This document shows positions 47,750 through 50,700 of a DNA stretch of 64,000 bases, in pieces. The position numbers and the translations under genes were made by a program. A model generated the notes under the pieces. It ran no database searches and had not been told where the DNA came from. It worked only from the letters and a program-made list of their open reading frames with translations. How positions within the stretch are numbered: position 1 is the stretch's first letter; each line of letters begins with the position of its first letter. Origin of the DNA: Hormiphora californensis (Eukaryota > Animalia > Ctenophora); NCBI GenBank assembly GCA_020137815.1, contig CM035362.1, positions 5,208,001 through 5,272,000 of the forward strand, in the 5' to 3' direction.

Positions 47750-50700
47750 ATGGGGTTGAATGTTGGTCTTCAGATAGTTTCGATATTAGTTTTCATTCTC
47801 GCAGCTTCAGGTAAGATTGTTTACTAATTTGTACAATGAAATTGTGTAAATTATACAGATTTAATAGTTTTCTAACCATAGACTAGCTGTGCAAGACCTG
47901 TTAGGTCTGTGTACTACGCGCTAGTGTCACCTACCAAAAGGATTGAATTTTTAATTCAATTCCAAGTTAAATATTTATCCCCTTATTCCCGCTTATTATC
48001 CTCTTATTCCCACTCCTTCAGCCCAATCGACAGGACAGTGCAACGGTGCTAAAACCTGTGCTGACTGCATCAAAACACACTACACGTGCAAATGGTGCAA
48101 AGATGTGGTATGTACTGCGATATTAAGTGCACATGTTATATATCTCTCTAATCATGGGTGATAATGAGCGTGTAACTAAACACTGATTGAATTGTGTGAA
48201 TCGTACAATGACCGGAACAATGAAATAGATATTTCTAGTTCTTCATACCCCCCCCCCAGAATTACTCTTCACCCCATAAATCATTATATCCCCCTCCCAG
48301 GATTACTCTTCGCCAAGATGCCAATCAGACGTTAACCAGGAGATTGGAGATACCTGTGTGAACTGGGAGTTTCCTGTGAGTAGTAACACTCATAATTTGA
48401 TCTGTTTTAAAATGCTTGGTTATCAGTAGAACACACTGTAATTTGATCTGTTTTAAAATGCTTGGTTATGAGAATAACAATAGCTACGTAACTCTGAAAA
48501 TGCAATATTACGTATATAATTTACTTCTTTCAAATGGATAAACAATAAATTTCAATTGTGCTGTGAATATACGCAGATTAATTTAGGGGTAGACAATAAT
48601 CGCGTTTATTGGTTGGTTGGTTGGTTGGTGATACTAAGCCGACGTTCTACCAAGCTCTTTGAGCGGTGTGACGCGGTGACTCCCAAACTGATTATCCAAA
48701 TCACTTGTGTGAAAGAGATAATCGCGTTTATTCTAAGCTAACTAATCTAACATATAATATTTGCAGGTATCAGATGTGCGGCGTGACATAAGCCCCTTTG
48801 ATAGTATAATTCAGGTCCAACCCAACGCGATTAGAATCACACAGCTCAGACCAGGTATTTAGGAGTCTCACATTTCAGTTTGTTTAGAAGTCTTATATTT
48901 CATTACATTATACAGCTCTCACCAGTATAAAGTATTGTATCATTTTATTCCCCCATTTTTGTCAATGACTTCACAAACTTCAAAGTTAGCCTTGAGAAGT
49001 TCCACGGTAAAACCACCACCACTCAACAAGAATCATTGCATTATGTATTCATAATGCTGTGTTTCCCTGCCCTCCCGTTTCACGTGTCACTGTCACTGTC
49101 AACAGGATCAAGGCCTGGTCATAATGTAATGTGAGATGCATACGATCTAGCTGTCAGTATACTTCTCACATAGCTTAGTGTACTCACATGACACTTGCTA
49201 ACCAGCTTTTGACATTCCAACTTAACTACTTATCTAACCTCTCACACTCGACTCGCAAGATGACAATGTGTATGTAACACGCGAAACACGCGGCAGCGCT
49301 ATTCATGTTTTGTTGAGTGGCGCGCGCATACACGTCCATGAAACTGTGCCATTGTAAGTTTTGATAAAGGAGTAACGTGTTGTTGTGTGCGCGGCTCAGT
49401 TGCTACGCTGAGTACACCGGGTGGTACCGGGTTGCCCCTCGCAACGAAAGTGTGACCAAAATGGTCCCTCTACCGATTAGTTAGTATACCAAAATGTCGT
49501 TTTCGAATTCTAACCCTGCTATGCCTTTTTACAAAGTAAAAAGGCATCCGGGTGGATGCCTTCGGCATCCACCCGGGCAGGGAAAAAATTGCCTCATTTT
49601 GTTTATTCATTGCATTTTGTTTGTAAAATCAACCAGGCCGATGAGTAATAAAAAAACAAAAGCACGATATTACTTTCCGATGTATGACCTAACTTTGCCT
49701 TCCTCACCCTGCAGTTAGATCATACCAAGACCTTCCTATAAATGAAAAGCTGTAATTCTCCATTTCTGTTTTAATCCTCTCTCCTTTGCTCTAGTTGTAA
49801 TTTCTATAGATGTAGTTTAAAAACTGTTTTCTACCTTTATGTTTATAAGATCCAGCCTATTTAGTGCTACCAGGTAAAACCACCCCTTACGTCTCATTTA
49901 GCTATGACGTCTCGTCGCGAGTACAGCATCGTGGTTCTTGGCTCAGTTGGAGTTGGCAAAAGCGATCTGATCACCCAATACGCACATGGGTTCGCAGAGC
50001 ATGGCCAGTACAATCCAACTCTCGAAGATTCGTACAGAAAAGCTACTGTCATTGATAACACGCCCATGGTTCTTGATATTATTGATACAGCAGGCACGGA
50101 AGAGTATAATGCGATGAGAGATCTATACACCCGGAAAGGCGATGGCTTTCTTATCGTCTACTCAGTCACTAAAAGCAGCTCATTTCTCGAAGCAACTAAA
50201 TCTAGGGATGCCATCCTGAGTGTCAAGACAGGTTCCAGCAAGATTCCAATAGTTTTGGTGGGAAACAATAAAGATAAAGAGAGGGAAGTTACTTCTCAAG
50301 AAGGCCAGGATCTTGCTGAAAAATGGGGTTGCCCCTTTTATGAGACCACGACAACCCAAAAACTGGAAATTGAGGAGGTTTTCACGGCTTTGGTCCGGCA
50401 GATCATGTCCGATCACGATCAGGGTAAAGTTAAACAATCCCAAAATAGTGAGAGGTGTAGCGTGTGTTAAAGTTTTGTACACTGAATGAAAATACGGCCA
50501 AACCTCAATTTATTGGACTCCTCGGGGACGATTGAATACACGGTGAATACTAAATAAAATAGAGATATCTGAAATCATGAGAAATATATCCGTCCGGTTA
50601 ATAGAGATCCGGTAAATTGAGGTCTGAATGTTATATTTTGTTAAAAAGTTAATTAGTTTTTTTACCTGTGAGATTTTAGCCGAATCGGTTTCAGAAAAAG

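Follow-up and report, generated by a model that had tools for sequence, protein, structure and literature searches.

A divergent Rap2-like GTPase of Hormiphora californensis with altered guanine-base and RapGAP contacts

Introduction

Can a small GTPase of the Rap lineage that carries, as its ordinary sequence, substitutions at the Ras positions 12, 117 and 146 be a working gene, and what kind of switch would it encode? The question is raised by a 64,000-nucleotide stretch of the genome of the ctenophore Hormiphora californensis, referred to below as the window (contig CM035362.1, here C13:5208001-5272000, in an assembly of 110.7 Mb and 45 contigs). Positions 49904 to 50470 of its forward strand hold a Rap-like open reading frame (ORF), the window gene. 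A sequence-only reading of this DNA had proposed that the gene encodes a constitutively active or fast-cycling Rap paralogue that requires no guanine nucleotide exchange factor (GEF). The explanation that we favor, with a probability of about 45%, is that the window gene is a functional, lineage-restricted and fast-evolving Rap2 paralogue, the product of which would bind nucleotides weakly, exchange them rapidly, load itself with GTP, be poorly seen by the GTPase-activating protein (GAP) RapGAP and expose a Ras/Rap1-like effector face.

Results

The window gene encodes a Ras family protein with altered G4 and G5 motifs

The frame extends over 188 codons in a single exon, from ATG to TAA, and contains neither internal stop codons nor frameshifts. 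Its product matched the Pfam family Ras (PF00071) with an E value of 5.4e-42 and a score of 143.6 bits, as compared to a cutoff of 21.6, which places it in the Ras family. In a HMMER comparison with proteins of solved structure, the best match was Rap2A (2.2e-48), followed by Rap1B (~1e-43) and K/H-Ras (~1e-40). The AF2 model of the protein corresponds to a G domain with six strands and five helices, has a mean pLDDT of 82.5, and superimposes on KRAS, Rap1b and Rap2A with Foldseek TM values of 0.8-0.9. The confidence was 93-94 across G4 and G5, and fell below 50 at residues 30-34 and 37-40 in switch I.

The nucleotide-binding motifs combine retained and altered residues. The P-loop GSVGVGKSD (49940-49966) has V at Ras position 12, encoded by codon 15 (GTT, 49946-49948), and D at position 18, and retains G10, G13, G15, K16 and S17. 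Switch I, GFAEHGQYNPTLEDSYRK (49988-50041), is longer by a net one residue due to an HG insert and shows the changes D33N and I36L as well as S39 in place of the F39 of Rap2, with T35 retained. In G3/switch II, DTAGTEEY (50084-50107), the Rap-type T61 is combined with the Ras-type pair E63/Y64, which replaces the Q63/F64 that contact RapGAP in Rap proteins. Y32, E37, D57 and G60 are also retained. G4 reads N-N-K-D-K (50264-50278, with NNKD itself at 50264-50275), so that K117 is replaced by N and a K occupies the place of L120, whereas N116 and D119 are retained. G5 reads E-T-T-T-T (50342-50356), corresponding to S145T, A146T and K147T. The protein terminates in the CaaX-type box CSVC (50456-50467), and the polybasic stretch of canonical Rap2 is lost.

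These data agree with the sequence-only reading with regard to the intact Rap-like frame, the states V12, D18, NNKD and ETTTT, the DTAGTE motif and the CaaX box. Its statement that the effector loop is intact holds for T35 but not for the loop as a whole, given the S39, which is Ras/Rap1-like rather than Rap2-like, and the D33N and I36L changes. The claim that F28 is displaced depends on the alignment: HMMER sets the Phe one position early, whereas MAFFT, run against the ctenophore Rap2, aligns it with F28 and places a one-residue deletion before it and the two-residue HG insert after it.

The same set of unusual residues is present in a second species

The exact window protein was absent from a collection of 15 billion proteins. 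Two relatives were found in ENA. P0001, encoded on a 720-nt contig of another species, shares 70-74% identity with the window protein and has the same D18, S39, E63/Y64, N116-N117-K and T145/T146 states as well as a CaaX box. The switch I stretch GFAEHGQYNPT is identical in both proteins. P0001 differs by A12, M61, an E at position 119 combined with a 6-residue insert in G4 (NNKE), and P147; its G5 reads E-I-T-T-P and its C-terminal end is CNVI. Judging from this pair, a residue other than Gly at position 12 is common to both orthologues, and Val12 is specific to H. californensis. In both, the canonical elements of G1, G2 and G3 (GxxxxGK[ST] in the P-loop, Thr35 and DxxG) are present; in the window protein, the G4 NKxD(L) and G5 (E)xSAK motifs have given way to NNKDK and ETTTT. 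As for the Rap2 markers, Thr61 is present in the window protein (DTAGTE), and Phe39 is replaced by S39 in both orthologues. The second relative, P0128 (151 amino acids [aa]; other species), is ~95% identical to P0001 over residues 1-95 and then continues into unrelated sequence. A metagenome scan returned only generic Ras/Rap loci that were 45-52% identical.

The frequency of these states was assessed in an alignment of 206 sequences, composed of 205 proteins from two database searches, the second of which used a profile of both orthologues, and the Rap2 of the same genome. Gly12 was present in 204 of the 206 homologues, Ala18 in 201, Lys117 in 204, Ser145 in 204 and Ala146 in 201. The exceptions at positions 12 and 18 were P0001 and P0128 only, both relatives of the window gene. 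Apart from the window gene, N117 was found in P0001 alone, the remaining exception at this position being S, and T145/T146 are common to the window gene and P0001. None of the 203 other near Rap/Ras homologues showed the V12, D18, NNKD or ETTTT states. In addition, the combination S39/T61/E63/Y64 was unique to the window gene among the 207 aligned sequences, and all 81 canonical Rap2-class sequences had F39. By this survey, the combination of unusual states is far from chance variation within the Rap/Ras family, and the window gene is conserved in at least two species within a narrow taxonomic range.

Among the outcomes that would refute its proposal, the sequence-only reading had listed sequencing errors and a decaying retrocopy. 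Both sequencing error and a fresh decaying copy are unlikely, because the gene is intact and its odd pocket is conserved in a second species.

The changes concentrate on the base pocket and include the RapGAP contacts

We defined family-conserved columns as those in which at least 90% of the Rap/Ras family share a residue (n = 65). Both orthologues kept the family residue in 47 of these columns, and both had changed it in 13. Changes in both orthologues affected five of the seven columns that contact the guanine base but only 8 of the 58 other conserved columns (P = 0.0026, or P = 0.009 if F28 is omitted). The base-contact columns concerned were F28 (by that alignment), K117, S145, A146 and K147, and L120 was also replaced. 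In contrast, none of the eight phosphate/Mg2+ ligands (G10, G13, G15, K16, S17, T35, D57 and G60) had changed. The assignment of residues to base or phosphate contacts follows established knowledge of Ras structures. On the aligned sequences, the pattern is one of directed rebuilding of the base pocket, as opposed to scattered decay.

Several of these states have been characterized in RAS and Rap1. KRAS A146T releases GDP ~12-fold faster than the wild type and is only mildly impaired in GAP-mediated hydrolysis, K117N raises GTP loading, and A18D is wild-type-like (reviewed in PMC6813200). The sequence-only reading had also extended to Rap the logic by which G12V impairs hydrolysis in Ras. This extension fails, as Rap1 G12V does not block RapGAP and stays GAP sensitive (Scrima 2008, PMC2265111). 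The substitutions Q63E and F64A, however, reduce RapGAP stimulation of Rap1 by 7.7- and 12.5-fold, respectively, and both abolish Rap1GAP complex formation (PMC2265111); the engineered double mutant Rap1b(G12V,Q63E) serves as a GTP-locked protein (PDB 7c7j). Given that Rap1 G12V is still RapGAP sensitive while Q63E and F64A lose binding, E63/Y64 and not V12 should be the basis of any argument for GAP escape. The E63/Y64 pair, to which the first reading made no reference, would be the better signal of GAP escape. What holds up are the non-Gly residue at position 12, K117N and T145/T146, all common to the orthologue, whereas V12 itself is species specific.

Matches to the RapGAP domain (PF02145) were present at five loci of the genome, namely, C6:6451372-6451941 (minus strand), C6 at 4.127 Mb, C9 at 5.087 Mb, C9 at 5.793 Mb and C10 at 7.267 Mb. 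One of them is a full-length domain in an open frame of 885 aa. These loci are candidate regulators of the canonical as well as the divergent Rap2.

The window gene derives from ctenophore Rap2

A canonical Rap2 gene is located on the same chromosome, 2.5 Mb from the window gene, as a single open frame on the minus strand (C13:2718552-2719115). Its product is 91% identical to Bolinopsis microptera XP_063693210.1 and is grouped with the "Rap-2a-like" protein of that species in one 90% cluster family. This canonical gene has G12, A18, F39, Q63/F64, NKKDL, ETSAK and a polybasic CaaX tail; the K117N change of the window gene corresponds to a single codon, because the parental G4 reads NKKDL. The only DNA-level match of the window gene in the genome was this Rap2 (68% identity over 491 nt). 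The two genes resemble each other in being intronless and on the same chromosome, their proteins are 54-56% identical, and they share the lineage motifs RREY, QY, IDNTP, WGCPFYET and FTALVR in addition to T61 and the CaaX box.

The likeness extends to the 5' end, where an AG is placed 2 nt before the ATG in both genes. Read directly from the window, this AG closes a splice-acceptor-like pyrimidine tract on the forward strand (49890-49901), and the layout in the parent Rap2 is identical. The tract is a candidate acceptor for cis-splicing or for trans-splicing of a spliced leader. Downstream, an AATAAA, also read directly, is a candidate poly(A) signal at 50553-50558, 83 nt past the stop codon, and no genomic A-run follows it.

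In a maximum-likelihood tree of 47 sequences (LG+C20, Ras as the outgroup), the window protein and P0001 formed a pair with support of 100/100. This pair was sister to all sampled ctenophore Rap2 proteins (82/93) and placed within Rap2 (94/99). Its stem had a length of 2.09 and its tips lengths of 0.36-0.39, as compared to 0.006-0.06 for the tips of canonical ctenophore Rap2. Among ctenophores, canonical Rap2 shows 88-93% conservation; the window gene evolves ~10 times faster, and all the states listed above for the canonical gene, from G12 to the polybasic tail, are changed in it. The tree assigns the window gene to the Rap2 subfamily, although the long branch leaves its exact placement uncertain.

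Taken together, these data fit an origin by DNA-level duplication of ctenophore Rap2 on the same chromosome, with the 5' acceptor kept. The shared acceptor layout and the AATAAA without an A-run argue for a DNA-level duplicate and against a retrocopy, and the intronless state is explained by a parent gene that is itself intronless. We considered a processed pseudogene or a retrocopy headed by a spliced leader and rejected it on the grounds that the frame is open, that no A-run follows the AATAAA, and that the ATG is preceded by an acceptor-like tract and not by a leader, although no search with the leader sequence itself was made; the layout of this tract is shared with the intronless parent. 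The idea that the window gene substitutes for a missing Ras was likewise rejected. An exon-by-exon reading, with the exons left unjoined, located a canonical Ras of several exons on C8, as well as Rap1-like exons both on C2 and on C5; since these genes are present, the window gene is an extra paralogue.

The window gene looks like a constrained gene

Differences between the window protein and P0001 were rarer at family-conserved columns (9/65) than elsewhere (31/101; Fisher P = 0.016). The column entropy was 1.59 at sites that differ between the orthologues versus 0.93 at identical sites (P = 0.0003). Three indels separate the two genes, and all three are in frame. With respect to the parent Rap2, dN/dS was ~0.22 (Nei-Gojobori; dN of 0.325 and dS of 1.45, which is near saturation). 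By these measures, the window gene looks like a constrained gene and not like one in decay.

Genomic surroundings and other GTPase genes

The window gene stands alone as a substantial ORF in a stretch of ~20 kb that abounds in microsatellites and repeats. Two N-runs, corresponding to assembly gaps, are located near 44.55 and 57.43 kb of the window. Long CT/GA microsatellites are found at ~42.8-43.4, 51.3, 52.4-52.7 and 54.1-54.7 kb, and a fragment of a LINE-type retroelement with weak RNase H and zf-RVT matches lies on the minus strand at 56592-57113.

Upstream of the gene, an interspersed repeat of ~565 bp (49025-49590, forward strand) ends 313 bp before the ATG. It has at least 760 candidate copies in the genome that are 85-98% identical over the body, with a last segment of 110 nt that is ~100% identical in dozens of them. 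The repeat contains a 13-bp GC-rich hairpin (49548-49576) and looks like a young SINE-like element. It had no match in Rfam, and an Rfam scan of positions 47000-53000 gave nothing meaningful. The 308 bp between repeat and ATG are unique in the genome. They include a 30-nt stretch (49671-49700, forward strand; 204-233 bp upstream of the ATG), itself unique in the genome, whose translation corresponds to the end of the P0128 tail, YFPMYDLTLP. This match may point to an upstream element that has been conserved or to a partial (tandem) duplication in the species of P0128.

A separate set of unusual GTPases was noted on C1 (5941900-5968200; loci L005, L009, L010, L011, L022 and L026), where a tandem array holds at least 10 intronless Rho/Rac-like ORFs of 179-214 aa. 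Most of them read DTGGGEDY (A59G, Q61G), GSKVDLRD and ECSSK, and end in CaaL. The array is a natural family without the catalytic Gln61.

Discussion

The proposal that we favor envisages a protein in which the phosphate/Mg2+ machinery and the G-domain fold are kept, whereas the base pocket (K117N, loss of L120, S145T, A146T, K147T and the remodeled switch I), P-loop positions 12 and 18, and the RapGAP contacts (Q63E/F64Y) are rebuilt. The rebuilt pocket would confer a weak affinity for guanine nucleotides and fast spontaneous exchange and, because cellular GTP exceeds GDP, such exchange would load the protein with GTP in the absence of a GEF. Recognized only poorly by RapGAP, it would then remain GTP bound for the most part, and its output would be set by expression, turnover or localization. 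The effector face has shifted from the Rap2-type F39 to the Ras/Rap1-type S39, together with N33, so that its partners would probably differ from those of Rap2. We infer the expression of the gene and all of these biochemical properties. A broader version, which we regard as tentative, is that, in a group of comb jellies, a conserved switch of the Rap lineage has become a self-loading, RapGAP-blind GTPase with a Ras-like effector face, in which the non-Gly12 and E63 states of the laboratory GTP-locked mutant are joined to a fast-exchange pocket (N117, T145 and T146).

Several observations weigh against the proposal. V12 is not conserved, P0001 having A12, and the corresponding Rap1 mutant remains RapGAP sensitive. 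The relatives found amount to one intact orthologue and one truncated copy, and neither of the two database searches yielded a Bolinopsis orthologue, although the Bolinopsis proteome was included. The very long branch indicates that relaxed constraint is part of the story, and 8% of substitution-only neutral simulations keep the ORF open at this divergence, which makes frame retention a weak test. Moreover, with four or five pocket changes stacked, the affinity may be so low that the protein is largely nucleotide free.

The last point leads to the view that the window protein is a low-affinity pseudo-GTPase, acting as a mostly nucleotide-free scaffold or sequestering Rap GEFs in the manner of dominant-negative base-pocket mutants. 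That the two orthologues both depart from the family at five or six of the eight classical base contacts, that P0001 has in addition the E at D119 and the 6-residue G4 insert, and that AF2 assigns low confidence to switch I are all compatible with it. We nevertheless consider it unlikely, since G10, G13, G15, K16, S17, T35, D57 and G60 are kept in both species, which is unexpected if binding were irrelevant. N116 is also retained in both orthologues and D119 in the window protein, and Ras proteins that carry K117N or A146T alone are GTP loaded and not empty (PMC6813200). A pocket changed at the base but not at the phosphates could alternatively mean that the protein accepts a purine base different from guanine, or a ligand that is not a nucleotide. 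The readers of the guanine edge, N116 and D119, are however kept in H. californensis, and the protein carries none of the known specificity-switch states, such as D119N, which makes altered specificity highly improbable.

It could also be that the protein cycles normally, either because its odd residues compensate each other or because lineage-specific GEFs and GAPs read them. D18, the switch I insert, N117 and T145/T146 are coordinated and conserved and could be co-adapted; the protein still has T61, T35, Y32 and E37; and Rap1 G12V is still handled by RapGAP (PMC2265111), of which the genome has several domain loci. Yet the E63/Y64 pair removes two contacts needed for RapGAP binding (PMC2265111), and the states in question are tolerated by none of the 203 other close Rap/Ras homologues, so that an ordinary regulated switch appears rather improbable. 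Less probable still is a duplicate that drifts towards pseudogenization, unexpressed or functionless, with its frame open by chance. The rate of evolution ~10 times that of canonical Rap2 on a very long branch, the isolated position of the gene among repeats and microsatellites, including a young repeat that ends 313 bp before the ATG, the truncated P0128 in another species and the 8% of simulations with an open frame would be in accordance with drift. However, the intact orthologue keeps its CaaX box, the indels are in frame, the substitutions avoid family-conserved columns, and the changes are targeted to one functional surface of a confidently predicted fold. Furthermore, the gene has no poly(A) tract and no apparent spliced-leader head of a retrocopy, and its acceptor-like start is common to the parent gene.

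If the window gene is indeed a functional, self-loading Rap2 paralogue, it would represent an evolutionary experiment in which "oncogenic" Ras-type changes were fixed as a normal gene. Should the biochemistry hold, the RAS disease positions 12, 117 and 146 and the Rap1 GAP-escape position 63 would have been fixed together under constraint. Such a gene would illustrate how cells can live with, and make use of, a Ras family protein that is permanently loaded, and it would provide a co-adapted set of pocket residues for the study of nucleotide affinity in G domains.

The closest engineered counterpart is the GTP-locked, RapGAP-insensitive mutant Rap1b(G12V,Q63E) (PDB 7c7j; Scrima et al. 2008), which likewise combines V12 and E63 with T61 on the scaffold of a Rap protein. 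In the window gene, in contrast, these states are natural and occur together with Y64 and a rebuilt base pocket, and the orthologue has A12. The K117N and A146T mutations of RAS, known from cancer and Costello syndrome, change the same residues to the same amino acids as in the window protein (N117 and T146). In RAS they arise singly, as somatic or germline disease mutations, whereas in the window gene they are fixed and combined with S145T, K147T and the loss of L120. In concept, the window protein would resemble the atypical Rho GTPases Rnd1-3, RhoH, RhoU/RhoV and RhoD/Rif, which are naturally GTPase deficient or fast cycling and are controlled by expression (reviewed in PMC13236570). In the latter, the natural loss of Gly12-type or base-pocket (F28-type) residues leads to independence of GEFs or GAPs, but they are vertebrate Rho family proteins with other substitutions. 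To our knowledge, and according to our literature search, no Rap family example with this combination has been described. The window gene would add a Rap-derived example, restricted to a narrow lineage, to the atypical small GTPases, which so far have been known chiefly as vertebrate Rho proteins. On present sequence evidence, it is a Rap2-derived version of the established atypical-GTPase idea, and its set of substitutions differs from theirs and is unusually complete.

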